Notes under the pieces: generated by a model | The model's database searches: none | What the model was told of the DNA's origin: nothing | Seen by the model: only the letters and a program-made list of their open reading frames with translations | Assembly (NCBI RefSeq): GCF_011386835.1 | Contig: NC_088812.1 | Location: forward strand, 3,968,001 to 4,032,000 | Reading direction: 5' to 3' | Length of the DNA: 64,000 nucleotides | Source: Chrysemys picta bellii | Taxonomy: Eukaryota | Shown here: piece after piece, positions 8,458 to 16,862 of the stretch | How positions within the stretch are numbered: the first letter of the stretch is position 1 | Layout of the letters: each line of letters begins with the position of its first letter | Translations under genes and position numbers: made by a program

Positions 8458-8620
8458 AGGCAGTATGGCCTAGCGGACAGAGCCTTGGGTTGGGACACCT
8501 GGGTTCTAGGCCCAGCTCTGCCTGCTGGGTGACCTTGGGCAAGCCACTTCCCTGCCTCAGTTTCCCCATCTGTAGCATGGGGGGAATGATTGTGACCTCC
8601 CTTGTAAAGTGCTTTGGGAT
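8458..8620 (+). mobile_element. MIR/CORE-like SINE (further fragments near 1005, 2030, 3760, 7040, 8230, 15340, 23140, 42640, 53700)
   Basis: tRNA-like head plus core gtgaccttgggcaag...cctcagtttccccatctgta. Confidence 0.8.
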
Positions 8621-9334
8621 TGGCTGGATAAGAGCCTAGAATTATTTCTGCACATGCCCAGTTCCGTTCTCTCTGACTCCAACTCCTGGCGCTCCGGAGT
8701 TCCTAACGTAACCCTTTAGTGACTTCAGTACAACCCCGCCCCCTGCCAAAGGGGCAGTGGGCACCAGGAACTGGCTGAGAGAAATCCTGAGCAACCGAGT
8801 TCAGTCCGGGGAGGATCCCAGCCAGGCTTGGAGCCCCGGAGGTGCGCGGAAGAAACCAACCAACCTCCACAAGAGGTTGTAAACGCTGGGGGGGGGGGGG
8901 GGGCTCCTGAATCCCTTGCTCAAACGACCCCAAATTCGCACCACGGACCCTACCCCGCTCCCCTATGAGGCACAGCAAATTTCACGCCAATCCGAGTAAG
9001 TGGACGGATCGTAGAGCGCCCAGAAGAGCCGACCTGATGGAGGGGTAGGCTTGGTGGTCTGTGGGTCTAATGGATGCAGAGCTGGGGGCAGGGGGTTACG
9101 AGTGGTTCTGACCCCTTTCTCTCTGTCCCTCTCCCAGGTGGTGAAACCCTGGGGGCTGCCCGGTTCCCGGTCATCCCCATCTCCAAGGGCCCCCCACGCC
9201 CCCCAACGGCCTGAGGACGCCGGGAAGCAGGAGGTTGTGTGACAGTTGCACCAGCAGGATTGTGATCTCTCCAGGGAAAGGGGGAGTGACCCCCCCCCAT
9301 GTCTCCCCCTCCCTCCCAGACACCCGGGGGAGCG

Positions 9335-9407
9335 ATGGCGGGCTACAGTCACTCCTTGCTCCTGGCCGTGGCCCTGCAGTCCCTGTTACAGCCGGCCCTG
9401 GGCCAAA
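9335..9407 (+). CDS. CRB3: CRB3 coding exon 1 (signal peptide)
   Basis: ATG at 9335 in gcgATGG context; hydrophobic signal peptide; donor GTAGGT at 9408, phase 1. Upstream acceptors at 9137 and 9319. Confidence 0.88.
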
Positions 9408-12400
9408 GTAGGTGGTGGGTTGTTAAGTGCATCTGCTTCCACACCAGGGGGGAGGGGGGCTGGGAGCCAGAACTCTTGGGTGGGGAGTGGGGTCTAGTGG
9501 TTAAACAGCCTGGAGTTCTCTTAACTCCACCACTGATTGAGCGAGTGATTTTTCCCTTATGCTCACCCCTTCTCCTTCTGGTTGGTAGGGACAGAAATCT
9601 TATCTGCTGCTCCAATGGCCCAGGACCGGAAGGAGAATCCCCCTCCCTATAGGTAGTATAGGCCCTATGACACACATCCAAGCACTTCTGATTCCATGCA
9701 GCAGAGGGCAGCGGTGCCCCCCCTGCAATAAAGTGGATAGAATCGTTCACTGGAGCCCGGTGCTAGCAAGATCTACTGCGGGCAAGTCACCCTGGCAGGA
9801 GGCTACAGCTTAACTTGACTAAAGTTGCTGTTGGGCTGTTGTTAGCTGGGACAGCCGGAAGGAGGCTTTAGATTCTGGTCACCAGGGACGCAGCACCGGG
9901 GTCAACCCAGCAAGAGGTTGCTGCTGCCCCCTTCCCCCCAGGGCAAACCGCAGGTGTGTTTGTGGAAGGCCCCTTCCCTGTTACGGCTTGATCCCGTCCT
10001 GTCCCGGGCCCCGAGCCAGCCCTGGCGGAGAGCCGGGGGAGCGGGCGCGGTGGGGCAAGGTGGTTTCAGTTGTCCCGGCGCTGGGTTTCGGAGCCTGACA
10101 CGGGTGGATCCACACCCTGGAGGGGGTGGAGGGAGGGAGAGGCTGGAACAGGGGGGGTGAGTCACCTCTGCTGGGGGAATGTCCCTGGGACTGGCTGATC
10201 TGTTAGCACCCCACCCCCGTGTGTCTCTGTTTACAGGTGGAGTCACCTACAAGAGTTTTAAGACCCCCCCATGCATCAAACAAACAGTTTCAACCCCCCC
10301 CCCCCAAGCATGTAACTTACTGCTCTGGGCAAAGGGGGGGAGGGTCCAAATTCCTTATCAAGGACACTCCGCCTGCCTTGCAAACTGTATCCAGGCTGCA
10401 CAGTAAGGCCTAGTGGTTGGAGCGGGGGGCTGGGAGCCAGGGCTCCTGGGTTCCATTCCCAACCCTGGCAGGATCTAGGGCTTGGGAGGTGGGGGTGGGG
10501 TAGGAGTAGGGGCTGCTGGATTCTCAGCCCTGGGAGGGGAGTGGTTAGAGCAAGAAGTGGGAGCCAGGACTCCTGGGTTGTATCCCCAGCACTGAGAGGA
10601 GAGTGGGGTCTAGTGGTTAGAGCGGTGTGTATACTGGGGCTCCTGGGATCTATCCCCAGCTCTGGGAGGAGAGTGGGATTTAGAAGGGGGAGGGTGCTGA
10701 GAGCCAGGACTCCTGGGTTCTATCCCCAGCTCTGGGAGGGGAGTGGGATTTAGAAGGGGGGGTGCGGAGAGCCAGGACTCCTGGGTTCTATCCCCAGTTC
10801 TGCCATTGACTAGCAAAGCGGGGTGGGGGGTGTGACTTGGGACCAGCTGTACTGCCTTGTGCGGGGAGAGTCCTGTGCATACCACCCCCCCCCTCCCCCC
10901 TGCTGGATCCCAGAGCTCTGAGTCGCACCCCGGTCCTGGGAAGGGCTCCAGCCTGTTCAGGCCTGACCTGCTCTCTAGGTTGCAATGCACAACCGCCCTG
11001 GGGCTGGGAGCATGGGCTGAAGGCCAGGCTGGGGGCTGGGCAGGGCAGGATGGAGCGGAGAGGGGCACCCTGGGAGTTGTAGTTCCCTTCCTGCGTAATG
11101 GCAAGGCAGGGGAAGGGAGCGGCTGGCGTGTTGCTTACAGACTGGAAGCAGAGTCCCGGGCCCTGGGAGGCTGGATGGTGCATGGGGGAGCGGGGATGAG
11201 CCCAGGGGGGCAGTTGAGTTGTACCATCAATATTGGGTGGACCTGCTGGGAGCAGGGCTAGTGGTTAGAGCTGGGAATCGGGGCTTCTGGGTTCTGTCCC
11301 CAGTCCTGGCAGGGAAGTGGGGATGAGTGGTTAGAGCAGGGTGGGCTGGGAGTCAGGACAGCTGGGTTCTGTCCCGGCAGGGAAGTGGGGATGAGTGGTT
11401 AGAGCAGGGTGGGCTGGGAGTCAGGACACCTGGGTTCTGTCCCCTGTCCTGGCAGGGGTGTGTGGGGGGGTCTAGTGGTTAGAGCTGGGGGCGGGGGAAG
11501 TTGGGTTGCATGAGCATAGTAGGGGCTGGCTTGTGTGCACAGCTCCCCAGGTGGTAGCGTGGGCTGGTGGTTGATGGTTTTCTCTTGCTGAGCTGAGCTC
11601 CTGGGGGGCAGCGTCAGGCCAGGTTGCTGTCGGGGTAGCAGGCGAACTGTGGTTTCTGCTGGAGGTGAAGGGCCCCCAGAAGGCAGAATCAGGGCCCCCC
11701 CCCGGGGTGGTGCTAGGGGGGCGCTGTGCTGCAGGGAGTGGGCCAGGGGGCGTTGTCAGTGCTGACCCCAATGCCCCACTGTGGCACTAGGGGGCGCTGT
11801 GTTACAGGGCGCAGGGGCTGGGCTCGGTAGGGGGCGCTGTCCCGTTGAGGTCATTAAAGGTCACTCCATATGGCACTTTTCCAAGAATTGCGGTGGTGAT
11901 AATTTAGGGAGGATGTGAGAGCGCACTTGGATAACCCCAGGCTGCTGCCTCCCTAAATAACCTTCCCCCTGCCCTGGTGCACTTGAAACTGGGAATCTCC
12001 TTCACTTCCTGTCCTAAACTATTGTCTTGCTCTGCGGTGGCTAACCAGCTGCCACACCCCACCCCAGAGGTGGCTGCATGTTGGTTCTGGTGCCTGCGTA
12101 GCATCAGTGCCATGGTTGAGCTCTCTGATGGCGGGGGGGGGGGGGAACTCCAGCAGAGGCCTCCTAACAGCTAAGCCTCCTATCGCACCCCCTTGCTGTA
12201 CCCCTCCCCACACTAAGCTCCGCTCTCTTTATTCCTCTTTTAAATCAAGCCACGAACAGGAGCACCGTGACACCCACATCCGTATCGGGGCTCACGGTAA
12301 GTAGGCGTGGGGGGGCGGATCAGCTGTGTGTGTTTGGGGGGGGGGAGTTATCCCAGCATGCACTGGGGAGAGAGACTTGAGTGGAACTGGGCCGGAAGCT

Positions 12401-12873
12401 TGGAGATATTGTTCAGGGTGTGTGTGTGTGTGTGGGGGGGTCCAATTTGGGAAGGGGGGGGGTCTGGGGCAGGAGGCCTAGCTCCCCACCCCTGCCTACC
12501 ACCTCCTCTGGGAAGCCCCTGTCTTTACCTCCCACACTCTTGGTTGGCTCCTGGTGTAACACCCCCCCCCACACACACACAGCAGCTCTCTGCCCCCCAC
12601 GCCCATGGGGAGCTGAGCAGGGCATGATTCTGGTTCCGTCTCACTCTTTTCCCCCCTCCCCCCCGGCAGGAGTCGGAGCGGCTGGCGGCCATCATTGTCC
12701 CCTCCCTAGTCGGGGGTCTCCTGCTTATTGGACTTGTGATCTTTGGGGCGCTCAAGGTGCGGGAGAGGCGGCAGACGGAGGGCACCTACCGGCCCAGCAA
12801 CGAGGAGCAGGTGGGTGCTCGGGTGGTGACGAACGCTAACCTCCAACTGCCCCCCGAGGAGCGGCTGATCTGA
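9335..12873 (+). CDS. CRB3: Crumbs homolog 3 (ERLI isoform), 3 coding exons, 107 aa
   Basis: Exons 9335-9407, 12250-12296 and 12670-12873 join in frame with GT-AG. Protein: signal peptide MAGYSHSLLLAVALQSLLQPALGQ, short Ser/Thr ectodomain with NRS sequon, TM segment, RQTEGTYRPSNEEQ FERM-binding motif, C-terminal PPEERLI*. Adjacent to DENND1C as in human. Confidence 0.95.
10410..11500 (+). repeat. Degenerate tandem SINE-head-like repeats (family recurs across the window)
   Basis: ctagtggttagagc...ggactcctgggttctatcccc units; also at about 2090-2350, 3290-3420, 23220-23380, 34900, 36140, 39400-39740, 43180-43480, 45590-46110, 52500, 54380-54620, 55100. Confidence 0.85.
12250..12296 (+). CDS. 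CRB3: CRB3 coding exon 2 (TTNRSTVTPTSVSGLT)
   Basis: Pyrimidine tract plus AAG acceptor, GTAAGT donor, phase 1 to 0 fits both neighbours; N-glycosylation sequon. Confidence 0.85.
12670..12873 (+). CDS. CRB3: CRB3 coding exon 3 (TM and cytoplasmic tail)
   Basis: ESERLAAIIVPSLVGGLLLIGLVIFGALKVRERRQTEGTYRPSNEEQVGARVVTNANLQLPPEERLI*. Confidence 0.96.
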   Translation, partial: ESERLAAIIVPSLVGGLLLIGLVIFGALKVRERRQTEGTYRPSNEEQVGARVVTNANLQLPPEERLI

Positions 12874-14762
12874 CCCGGGCGGAGGGGGGGGGGTCACACA
12901 CACCCCCTCCCCGGACTGGCAGACTCTGTACCGGCTGGACCCTGTGGTTGCACATCTGGAAGGGGGGGGGCGGCTCCTTGCTCTCCGCTGGCTGGAAGGA
13001 GCCGAGGTCTTCGTCGCTGGATGCATTGGATTTCCACCTGCGCTCTCCTCCTGCGGGTTGGAGGGGTGCTGCCCGGTGAAACGGCTGGCCGTGCTGGTGC
13101 TGCGCGACATCGCCCCCTGGTGGCAGAAGCGGCGGGAACCTCTGCTGCTGCGCTGGGATATTGGCAGAACGCTCACACCTTGCGCGTGTTTCCACCTGGC
13201 TGAACGCTTTATCCCCTCCACCCCCGTCTGCGTCTCACACGTGTCCTGTAATCTCCCCTACCTCGGTCTGCGTCTGTCTGGCCTGGGGCCGGCTGCAGGG
13301 GGGTCAGCAAGCCGGCCCTCAGCTCGCATTGCAGGCTGCAGATGGGGAGTGACTCTGCATTGGCACCCGGGCTGGTGAAAGCGAGGCTGGTGCAGCAGCA
13401 AAGGAAGGGGAAGCTAGAAACTCCTGCCTGAGCCGCCGGAGAAGGGTTTGGCTTTTTAAAAAAAAAAAAAAAATCGCTGAAGGGAAACAGCCGTGTTTAA
13501 AAAACCGACCCCCCGGGTTAGTTAATACACATCAGCCCTCCTGTAGCCTGAGGTGCAGACGGAAGGTAGCGGTAGAGAGGTTTAAGTCCCTTCACTGTTG
13601 TGCCTCAGTTTCCCCATCTATCACTCCCCCTCTTCCTGGTGCTGTCCCGGCTACAAAACCAGCAGCCTTCTTGGGTGCATGTGGAAGGTGCCACATCGCT
13701 CTCTAGCGGCTGGTGAATGCAGAGGATAATAGCCTCCTGCGGCTGTCAGCGGATGGAGCCGCTCCTTGGGCTGGGCTGGGGTTACTGGACTCAAACCGGG
13801 GGCTGCTGATGGGGTCATTTCTCATGGTGGGGGGAGGGGTGAAATACACTAATAACTCAGAAAGCAACTGGGTGGCCTTTTTTGCTGTCCTGTCTATGGG
13901 GAATGTAACCAAACTGCACCCAACTTAACGAGCCAAATCTTCGTCCTCCGGCAGGGCCGTGGTTCATCCCCCCCTTAAACCAAAACTTGCTGGAATCTTC
14001 TCCCATGTGCGGCATCCCCCCCCGGAGCAGGTGCCGGTGGTCTTTTCCCCCAAGCCGCAGTGTCCCACAGCACAACCCTGCCCCATTGCTGCTCCCCCGG
14101 CCGGCACCAGGGCTAAGGTTATTTCCCTGCATGGGGCAGCCTGGGGTAAAGCAACCAGGGGGCCCCCCCATCGGCAAGGCTGGAGCAGCAGCAGCCATCC
14201 CCCTGCCTCAGGCTTCCAGACCCGTCTGCAGGAGAAGCAGCTTGTGGGCCGATTTCCTCGCCCCATTAGCCACTCGTACCAGCCGCGGTTCCTAGAGCCT
14301 AGGGCTTGGTTTGTGGATCTTTAACTCGAAGGACTTTTCTCCCACCCGTGCCTTGGCCATTTGAGTTACGGGGAACACACACAGGTTTTAAACAGGCCAG
14401 CCCATGGTGCCGTGGGGGGTTGCTCTGACCATCTCAGCCTCTGTTGACTCTAATTTTGATACAGTGGCAGTGAGTTCCCCAGCTCCCAAGGGAGGAAGAT
14501 GCGGGGGGAGCTGTTTGCCCAGTGGGCCATCCAGCATCAGGGGTTGCTAAGACCCCAGTTCCCCAGCCGGCTGCTTGGGTCATCTTTACAGCCCCTGCTT
14601 CCTCACTGTAGGCTGTGTCTTGGCTCTGCACCCGTGCCTGCCGCCGGCGCCTCCGGGGCATGCCAACCTTGCTCAGTGGCTGGCTGAAAGCTTCCCCTGC
14701 TGGGCCAGCCGTCACCTGGTGCTGCGTGTTCTCCGCCTCCGTCACCTCTTCTCTCCTTTCAG

Positions 14763-14798
14763 TCCTCCCGGGAAGACCCGAAATTAACGGAGCTGTGA
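14763..14798 (+). CDS. CRB3: Candidate alternative CRB3 terminal exon (SSREDPKLTEL*)
   Basis: Strong acceptor ctcttctctcctttcag at 14762; phase 0 match to internal donor CAG|GTGGGT at 12810/12811, where mammalian CRB3B diverges. Confidence 0.5.
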   Translation, partial: SSREDPKLTEL

Positions 14799-15538
14799 GA
14801 GCCGGGAGCAAACGTCCCCAGAGTTTGGCCCTTGCCCTTTGAAACGGCCGGAGTTGGGATCTCCCGGCCCCATGCCCGCCCACTGGTCAGTTTCGCACCC
14901 TCTCCCCCCGCCACGGGGGTCACTCTACCCAGTTTTGCATGGGCCAGAGGCTGCCCCTTTCAACCTCCCTGTTCACCCAGCAGCAGGGGGGCTGGTCGCT
15001 GCCCTGTGATAATACAAATAAGTGCAGCAGGGCTGGGGCCCTGACATGGGACTAGCTGTTCACAGCCTTCTAGCCCTCAAATCTCTTCTTCAGCTGTGAC
15101 GGCTGAAGCAGGGCTGGGAGCCATGTAGGATTTAGGCTGCCATGGGAATCGAGGAGCGTTAGGCACCTCCAGCCCTTTGAGGAGCCGGGCCTCTGACCCA
15201 GGGGGTTTAGGTGCCCCTGTTGCTAATCTTCCCCCTTTTCTGCACCCAAATATGCAGCAATGTAGTTGAAGCTGTCCCCCGACGCTCGCCTAGAAAGGGA
15301 GGCTGGTCCTGCCAGGAAGGCCCTGCCTCAGACCCGCTGGGTGACCTTGGACAAGTCACGTCACCTCTCGTGCCTCAGTTTCCCTAGCTGTAGGAAGCCG
15401 GTCCTACAGAGCCAGCGAGGAGCAGGAGGCAGGGTTACCTGCCCCTCTGGGTGCTGGCATGGCAGCTTTTTAAGTTGGGTTTATACAGTGTTGTGTTTTT
15501 CCCTCCTCTGTGCAAATGTAACTTTTATTTTTTTGTAA

Positions 15539-15544
15539 AATAAA
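15539..15544 (+). terminator. CRB3 polyadenylation signal AATAAA
   Basis: First AATAAA I found downstream of both candidate CRB3 stops; U-rich upstream context. Confidence 0.7.
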
Positions 15545-15796
15545 CTAATTTTGGGATCAATTAAAAAAAAAAAAGGGGGGGGAGCGGGGCCCAGGCCCTC
15601 TCGCCCTTGCTGATGATGCATTTTTGCAGGGGGCGGGATCCGGTCAGCCAAGGGAGGGGAAGCTGCAGATGTCCTCGAGTACGGAGCCCCAAGGCGGGGA
15701 AGTGGGAGGCAGCAGGAGGCTGGCTCTGGGGAGCGTTCAGCCCCACTGTGGGACGGCTGATTGAATAGCAACCCGCTGGTGGTTCCACCATAAGCA

Positions 15797-15995: not shown

Positions 15996-16862
15996 CTAGG
16001 ACTCAAACCTCTTCTTCAGCTCCGATACCTTGGGCAGGGCCGGGGGCTGGGAGGCTTGGTCCAGCTCCGGCCAGGATGAGCTGGGCAGGGTGGCCCCTGC
16101 CCCCAGCGGGGGGACCCCGCCCCTGATGTCAGTTTGCCTACAGGCCTTGGCCTGGAACAGAGCCACAGCTGACTGGACCCTAGGGGAGGAGGGGCTATCC
16201 AGTGGGAGGTGGGGCTCTGCCCCAGGGGCGTGGCTATCCTGTTGGGGGTGGGGCTCTACCTCAGGGGCGGGGCTATCCTGTTTGGGGAGGGGCTCTGCCT
16301 CAGGGGTGGGGCTATCCTGTTTGGGGTGGGGCTCTACCTCAGGGGCGGGGCTATCCTGTTTGGGGAGGGGCTCTGCCTCAGGGGCGGGGCTATCCTGTTT
16401 CGGGAGGGGCTCTGCTCTGCACACCCCCTGCCCAGACTCTGGCCCTGTAGTGGCTGCTTCAGGGTGGCCTCCTGTCCCCACTTCTTCAGGGGGCCCCAGA
16501 GAGCCAGTGGTTGGTGTCAGCTCTGCCCCAGCCCCTCCGCCCCCCAGCTCCTTCTCCCCGAGCTGGAAGGGCTTGTGCCAGGGCACCCTGAGCGTTGCTA
16601 CCCTCTCAGCTGGCTGGGGAGGGCCCTCCTCATCCTCATTGATCCCACGGTCCCACATCCCGCTGGCCGGGCGCGTGGCCTTGGCGGGCAGCAGCAAAGC
16701 ATGCTGGGAGTCCCCAGCCTCCTCCTCGGCCAGGGAGGCCTCCTCCGAAGAGGGGGGGGCGAACTCCAGGGACGAGTCGTCCTCCTCGGCCAGCAGCCAG
16801 CACTCGTGGTCCCGGGCCTGGCGCCCGCTCAGGTTCTCCTCACTGGGGTTCGTGTGCCTCAG
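15996..16862 (-). CDS. DENND1C: DENND1C exon 23 (terminal, contains 39-bp coding repeat)
   Basis: [11 protein letters not shown]...[11 protein letters not shown]; acceptor ccttgtcccttccag. Confidence 0.92.
   Translation of the reverse strand: MRHTNPSEENLSGRQARDHECWLLAEEDDSSLEFAPPSSEEASLAEEEAGDSQHALLLPAKATRPASGMWDRGINEDEEGPPQPAERVATLRVPWHKPFQLGEKELGGGGAGAELTPTTGSLGPPEEVGTGGHPEAATTGPESGQGVCRAEPLPKQDSPAPEAEPLPKQDSPAPEVEPHPKQDSPTPEAEPLPKQDSPAPEVEPHPQQDSHAPGAEPHLPLDSPSSPRVQSAVALFQAKACRQTDIRGGVPPLGAGATLPSSSWPELDQASQPPALPKVSELKKRFES

Follow-up and report, generated by a model that had tools for sequence, protein, structure and literature searches.

The question raised by this locus is whether CRB3 of the turtle Chrysemys picta bellii encodes one C-terminus or two. 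The window is a stretch of 64,000 nucleotides (nt) from contig NC_088812.1 (positions 3,968,001 to 4,032,000 of the forward strand), and all positions below are counted from its first letter. CRB3 lies on the plus strand of the window and encodes a Crumbs protein that ends in the motif ERLI. An earlier reading of the DNA, here called the original prediction, proposed that splicing inside the last coding exon may remove ERLI and install a class I PDZ motif in its place, as an isoform particular to this lineage and an apparently undescribed rewiring of the Crumbs polarity module. The most probable answer, at about 80%, is that the last coding exon of CRB3 holds an alternative intron (12811-14762) that is the orthologue of the CRB3B splice. 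In this reading, the A form ends in ...EEQVGARVVTNANLQLPPEERLI and the B form in SSREDPKLTEL. The turtle B form is then no turtle invention but an ancient isoform, of which the end has changed through drift or retuning.

CRB3B is described in the literature as a mammalian isoform that is defined by its CLPI end and whose function is poorly understood. This form, CRB3-CLPI, is produced by alternate splicing within exon 4. Five mammals have it among their expressed sequence tags (ESTs), and for Drosophila and zebrafish the answer was "apparently not" (PMC2064851). Fan et al. (2007) did not detect binding of PALS1 or PAR6 by the CLPI form, which binds importin beta-1 and has a role in cilia and cell division (PMC2064851). 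Importin beta-1 binding and localization to the cilium and spindle poles are reported for canine and human cells only (PMC2064851). The literature search returned discussion of the B form in mammals only, and no paper on the turtle models.

The alternative intron has a consensus GT donor and a strong acceptor. The internal donor (12808-12816, plus strand) reads CAG/GTGGGT, with the slash marking the splice junction, and its GTG is also the Val codon of the A form. The donor follows the codons GAG GAG CAG in phase 0, with the last exon base G at 12810 and the GT at 12811-12812. The polypyrimidine tract and acceptor ...CTCTTCTCTCCTTTCAG occupy 14742-14762. At the acceptor itself, cacctcttctctcctttcAG, the AG (14761-14762) stands behind a tract in which 17/18 bases are pyrimidines. 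A crude polypyrimidine score places this acceptor ahead of all other AG dinucleotides between the ERLI stop and 15650, of which there are 168 in total with it. The intron between the two sites is 1952 nt long and is kept in the A form as coding end and 3' untranslated region (3'UTR). The B-specific coding part, SSREDPKLTEL and its stop codon (14763-14798, plus strand), is in frame with the donor, and splicing exchanges the 20-residue ERLI end for these 11 residues. The first polyA signal past the ERLI stop is the AATAAA at 15539. The donor, the acceptor, the in-frame tail, and this AATAAA were all located correctly by the original prediction. Upstream of the acceptor, by 65-90 nt, is a block of ~28 nt, TGCTCAGTGGCTGGCTGAAAGCTTCCCC (14670-14697, plus strand), that is almost invariant in an alignment of four turtles, a pleurodire among them. 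This block may be a branch site or a splicing control element.

Two database proteins of other turtles use the same junction. The NCBI model of Emydura macquarii, XP_067416534.1 (P0005), ends in ...EEQSSRADPKLTEL and has the tail SSRADPKLTEL. The GenBank protein of Caretta caretta (P0065), named "unnamed protein product", ends in ...EEQSSREDPKLTEL, and its tail is identical to that of the window. In tblastn, the last 12 residues of both proteins align to the homologue of the 14763-14798 exon, and the exon before the B tail stops at the EEQ donor. The window tail is thus the same as, or one residue apart from, the tails of its direct orthologues. P0005 and P0065 are unreviewed automatic predictions and come from two different annotation sources. 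A different use of the donor is seen in Lepidochelys kempii, where RefSeq isoform X1 leaves from the same donor at EEQ and reaches an acceptor ~8 kb downstream (L004, 14052 to ~22167). That acceptor lies inside the region of DENND1C, the neighbor on the opposite strand, and leads to an unrelated 42-residue tail. This far splice is possibly read-through noise.

The B exon was compared at the CRB3 loci of the window, Emydura, Gopherus, Lepidochelys, Caretta, and Mauremys, as well as those of Pelodiscus and Carettochelys, the last taken via its CRB3 isoform X1. In the first six turtles, the donor GTGGGT, the acceptor tract, the frame, and the position of the stop are intact. Their homologous introns are of similar length (1813-2026 nt in turtles other than the window). 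The tail is SSREDPKLTEL in the window, Gopherus, and Caretta, SSRDDPKLTEL in Mauremys, SSRADPKLTEL in Emydura, and SSREDPKLTKL in Lepidochelys. Across the six species, the tail has three synonymous changes and three replacement codons, and the replacements are found only at tail positions 4 and 10. Emydura is a pleurodire; therefore, the B exon is older than the divergence of pleurodires and cryptodires, the two suborders of living turtles. Five turtle species were aligned between the EEQ codons and the polyA site, and the share of invariant columns in the whole alignment is 37%. In the gap-free 60-nt block at 14752-14811, which spans the acceptor and the B coding part, it rises to 82%. This is the second most conserved 60-nt block, and only the block coding for ERLI is higher, at 92%.

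The comparison that ties the turtle exon to CRB3B is with the platypus. A query with residues 65-104 of Emydura P0005 returned mammalian B-type proteins. The platypus CRB3 B-type protein has the tail SSHAEARGPEDSKAKAARCLPC and ends in ...EEQSSHAEARGPEDSKAKAARCLPC (..CLPC), and the aardvark B-type protein ends in ...EEQSSHAAEARPPQDSKETVRGCLPI. The platypus donor is identical to that of the turtle, CAG/GTGGGT, and the platypus B exon follows an intron of 681 nt. At the platypus acceptor (L007, 7967-7985), the 19 nt of window 14746-14764, which run across the turtle acceptor, are matched exactly. In a control for this 19-mer, 0/200 shuffles matched, even when two mismatches were allowed. When the 2.7 kb past the turtle ERLI stop were compared with the platypus 3' region by blastn, the acceptor was the only match. 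Turtles and monotremes have been separate for ~310-320 million years. With its identical donor and identical 19-nt acceptor, the turtle exon is orthologous to the B exon of mammals, the one that makes CRB3-CLPI. The splice event is therefore at least as old as the amniote ancestor.

The resemblance to CRB3-CLPI extends to the design of the splice. In the turtle, too, the last coding exon is spliced internally, right behind ...GTYRPS-x-EEQ and in the same phase. This splice sheds ERLI, keeps the transmembrane and FERM-binding parts, and shares its polyA site with the A form. As in the platypus and aardvark B-type proteins, the turtle tail opens with SS. The differences are in the tail and in the intron. 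The turtle tail has 11 residues and ends in LTEL or LTKL, whereas mammalian tails have 22-23 and end in CLPI or CLPC, and the alternative intron is ~1.9 kb in the turtle compared with 0.68 kb in the platypus. Past the first SS, turtle and mammalian tails align only with gaps, and an R..ED-x-K core common to both is possible.

A further test of the exon is provided by turtles in which the donor is absent. Pelodiscus and Carettochelys are the softshell turtles and their sister. Both read EEQ-Ala at the junction, where GCA or GCG replaces GTG, and have no GT donor. In Pelodiscus, ~480 nt matching window 14370-14850 are deleted, and the acceptor and B exon are gone. In Carettochelys, an acceptor-like tract survives. 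The equivalent of the B exon there has five replacements within the first six codons, is shifted in frame by a deletion of 2 nt, and has lost the stop. Emydura and the other cryptodires bracket the branch of Pelodiscus and Carettochelys; therefore, the isoform is ancestral in this branch and was lost along with the donor. The loss of the exon together with the donor ties its conservation to splicing from the EEQ donor. The Val codon GTG is held partly as a splice donor and is a clear case of a codon kept for double duty. The softshell loss is also a natural knockout of the B isoform.

Outside turtles and mammals, a possible counterpart is an axolotl CRB3 model (P0067). Like the turtle B form, it departs after EEQ, has a tail that opens with SS, and has a class I-like end, S-A-V. 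Unlike the turtle tail, the axolotl tail has 31 residues, and in the protein model no similarity is detectable past SS. In the frog Nanorana, a donor-like CAG/GTGGGA is present, but no B exon is recognizable within 6 kb. The snake Candoia has an Ala codon (GCx) at the donor and gives no blast match to the B exon; this result is uninformative because of squamate divergence. The Candoia locus also contains SSGKEL (L005, 17847-17864), which matches the axolotl B tail at its start over six residues. No acceptor precedes it, and the match is taken as chance. No crocodilian or bird CRB3 protein was returned by the protein word searches.

From these comparisons, a mechanism can be proposed. When the intron is retained, the transcript would encode the canonical Crumbs tail ...EEQVGARVVTNANLQLPPEERLI of the A form. 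When 12810 is spliced to 14763, the last 20 residues would be swapped for SSREDPKLTEL. Both transcripts would end at the polyA site near 15560. The stop codon of the B form sits in the terminal exon, and nonsense-mediated decay of the B transcript would therefore not be expected. Compared with CRB3 isoform a (CRB3-ERLI), the B form comes from the same gene and has the same signal peptide, ectodomain, transmembrane helix, and FERM-binding motif. It ends in LTEL and is without the ERLI end, the ligand of PALS1 and PAR6. By mammalian precedent, the B form would keep its membrane anchor and FERM-binding motif and lose the binding of PALS1 and PAR6. By the same analogy, it may act apart from the Crumbs-PALS1-PATJ complex, like the mammalian B form. 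Judged from the DNA, the B form is presumably expressed in C. picta bellii.

Most of what the original prediction said of the splice holds. It placed the splice at the same EEQ position as mammalian CRB3B, and this agrees with the identical platypus donor and with the models of two other turtles that use the site. Retention of the FERM-binding part and loss of ERLI are likewise borne out. The view that the isoform belongs to one lineage and is a fresh rewiring does not stand, given an exon orthologous to the mammalian B exon with the same donor and 19-nt acceptor in the platypus. "Apparently undescribed" is true in so far as no paper was found on a non-mammalian B form, and untrue in so far as the protein is already present as automatic database models. 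CRB3B itself is known. What is new is a B form outside mammals, with a different short tail and a loss in one turtle lineage. The splice is at least as old as the amniotes, and what has been conserved is not the CLPI end. The candidates for the essential feature of the B form are thereby narrowed to the loss of ERLI, with the FERM-binding part kept and a short tail that opens with serines.

Several observations weigh against this reading. The annotations of Gopherus, Chelonoidis, Terrapene, and Mauremys list the ERLI form only, and nearly all turtle CRB3 models returned by the word search end in ERLI, with two of the B type. Because most turtle annotations list only the ERLI form, the B form may be minor or tissue-restricted. 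A sequencing-run search listed 20 runs that contain the stretch. The RNA-like runs among them contain 73-77% of the words sampled from 12600-15600, and 65% of this interval is putative intron. Provided that these runs are indeed RNA, this hints that the unspliced A form with a long 3'UTR is abundant. Finally, because turtles evolve slowly, 33 coding nt with few substitutions cannot by themselves prove selection on the B peptide.

If the splice is accepted, the next question is whether the tail itself does anything. One alternative is that the splice is real but serves only to take ERLI away, whether as a means of adjusting how much A form is made or to supply a decoy that has no ERLI, and that the tail is neutral. 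This is possible, though it is held only tentatively. It fits the variation of the tail by lineage, from 11 residues in turtles, with TEL as the end, to 22-23 in mammals, with CLPC or CLPI, and 31 in the axolotl, with SAV. It also fits the blastn comparison of the turtle and platypus exons, which no longer align past the acceptor and the first two codons, and the fact that softshell turtles live without the B form. A neutral tail is harder to reconcile with the turtles that keep the exon, in which the exon is free of indels and the stop has kept its place since the pleurodire-cryptodire split, while a frameshift was acquired in the one lineage without the donor. The possible SS..R..ED-x-K core common to turtle and mammalian tails points the same way, as does the specific partner of the mammalian tail.

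The second alternative is that of the original prediction. The B tail would be a working class I PDZ ligand that replaces PALS1/PAR6 and links the Crumbs3 membrane and FERM module to NHERF, DLG, SCRIB, or similar scaffolds. In turtles, the acceptor, frame, and stop are intact in 6/6, and the end is TEL in five and TKL in one (Lepidochelys). The new end fits the S/T-X-Phi rule for class I ligands (PMC2891790) in 6/6 turtles, as T-E-L or T-K-L. The Thr at -2 and the Leu at 0 are invariant in the six species, where replacements are confined to tail position 4 and the free position -1. The B tail would also be cytoplasmic and C-terminal, as ERLI is, and the axolotl B-type model likewise ends class I-like, in S-A-V. 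Nevertheless, a working ligand is unlikely. The S/T-X-Phi class rule is regarded as too coarse, and from residue frequencies it is estimated that ~4% of random ends would satisfy it. NHERF and DLG domains usually prefer an acidic residue at -3, where the turtle tail has Leu. The last four codons are no better conserved than neutral evolution would predict in turtles, and with few substitutions their conservation is a weak signal. The orthologous mammalian tail ends in CLPI or CLPC and acts via importin beta-1. Recruitment of NHERF- or DLG-type PDZ proteins by the B tail is conjecture. What the turtle tail does offer is a defined peptide whose end resembles a class I PDZ ligand.

A bolder extension of the PDZ idea is that the ERLI-less B form with a class I PDZ tail is an ancestral tetrapod trait, seen as T-E-L in the turtle and S-A-V in the axolotl, and that the importin-binding CLPI end of mammals is derived. 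One intron would then switch the Crumbs3 FERM module between PALS1/PAR6 and a second PDZ scaffold network in non-mammalian epithelia. This is speculative and quite improbable.

The weakest alternative, that there is no functional isoform and that a chance AG and a short frame in the 3'UTR look alike through slow turtle evolution while the two models reflect splicing noise, is in keeping with the many annotations that show only the A form and is nonetheless very improbable, since the 19-nt acceptor is identical at the monotreme B exon and is the only alignable element there, the B exon is a conservation peak, and the exon decays exactly where the donor was lost.

The rest of the CRB3 gene has the expected structure and, like the splice, is on the plus strand. 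The first coding exon (9335-9407) carries the ATG and the signal peptide, ends at the donor A/GTAGGT, and encodes the peptide MAGYSHSLLLAVALQSLLQPALGQ, for which turtle CRB3 models give a match of 87% identity. A short ectodomain exon (12249-12299) carries an N-R-S glycosylation site and ends at the donor ACG/GTAAGT. Its peptide, NRSTVTPTSVSGLT, agrees without differences with a Chrysemys picta bellii entry (P0008). The common part of the last coding exon (12670-12810) encodes the transmembrane helix and FERM-binding region and ends in EEQ. The A-specific coding end, VGARVVTNANLQLPPEERLI and its stop codon, occupies 12811-12873 and is spliced out in the B form. When the last exon is left unspliced, the protein ends in ...EEQVGARVVTNANLQLPPEERLI, with the stop at 12871-12873, and this A frame is unbroken at every locus compared, the window included. 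In a protein word search, with a window query made of the N-terminal residues up to the Val encoded by 12757-12759, the N-terminal 70 residues of the window CRB3 have up to 87% identity to turtle CRB3 models. Emydid entries come nearest to the exon peptides of the window, which points to an emydid or a near relative.

The 3'UTR common to the A and B forms (14799-15565) is 75-86% identical to that of other turtles. Its AATAAA (15539-15544) and an ATTAAA at 15560 are the sole polyA signals from the ERLI stop to 15650.

Some CRB3 entries of turtles differ elsewhere in the protein. The Caretta (P0065) and Dermochelys (P0066) models have long N-terminal extensions (GETLGAASSLSSPSPRAPQRAEDPGKQE...) from an upstream exon. 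This upstream 5' exon of CRB3 is read as coding in the two models, and the window has a stretch homologous to it (9139-9231). Carettochelys isoform X2 (P0004) ends in ...GALKVNVWG right after the transmembrane helix and is without the entire cytoplasmic tail. The Platysternon CRB3 protein (P0002) is named "nucleolysin TIA-1 isoform p40" in GenBank, an evident mislabel.

The neighbor of CRB3 on the minus strand is the DENN-domain gene DENND1C, both in the window and at every orthologous locus fetched, and the two genes are convergent. The last coding exon of DENND1C (15996-16697, minus strand) contains proline-rich repeats and ends near 15996. TTTATT at 15524-15529 is an AATAAA on the minus strand, ~10 nt from the AATAAA of CRB3, and the 3' ends of the two genes probably abut or overlap. 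A role of the B exon as DENND1C 3'UTR was considered as the source of its conservation and was rejected, as the B exon lies ~700 nt past the likely end of DENND1C.

Repeats are also present around the gene. A dispersed repeat, cctcagtttcccc(a/t)(t/g)ctgt, has copies at 8540-8570, 13600-13620, and 15380-15400. Tandem repeats rich in ctgggttct and ggagtgggg occupy 10400-11480.

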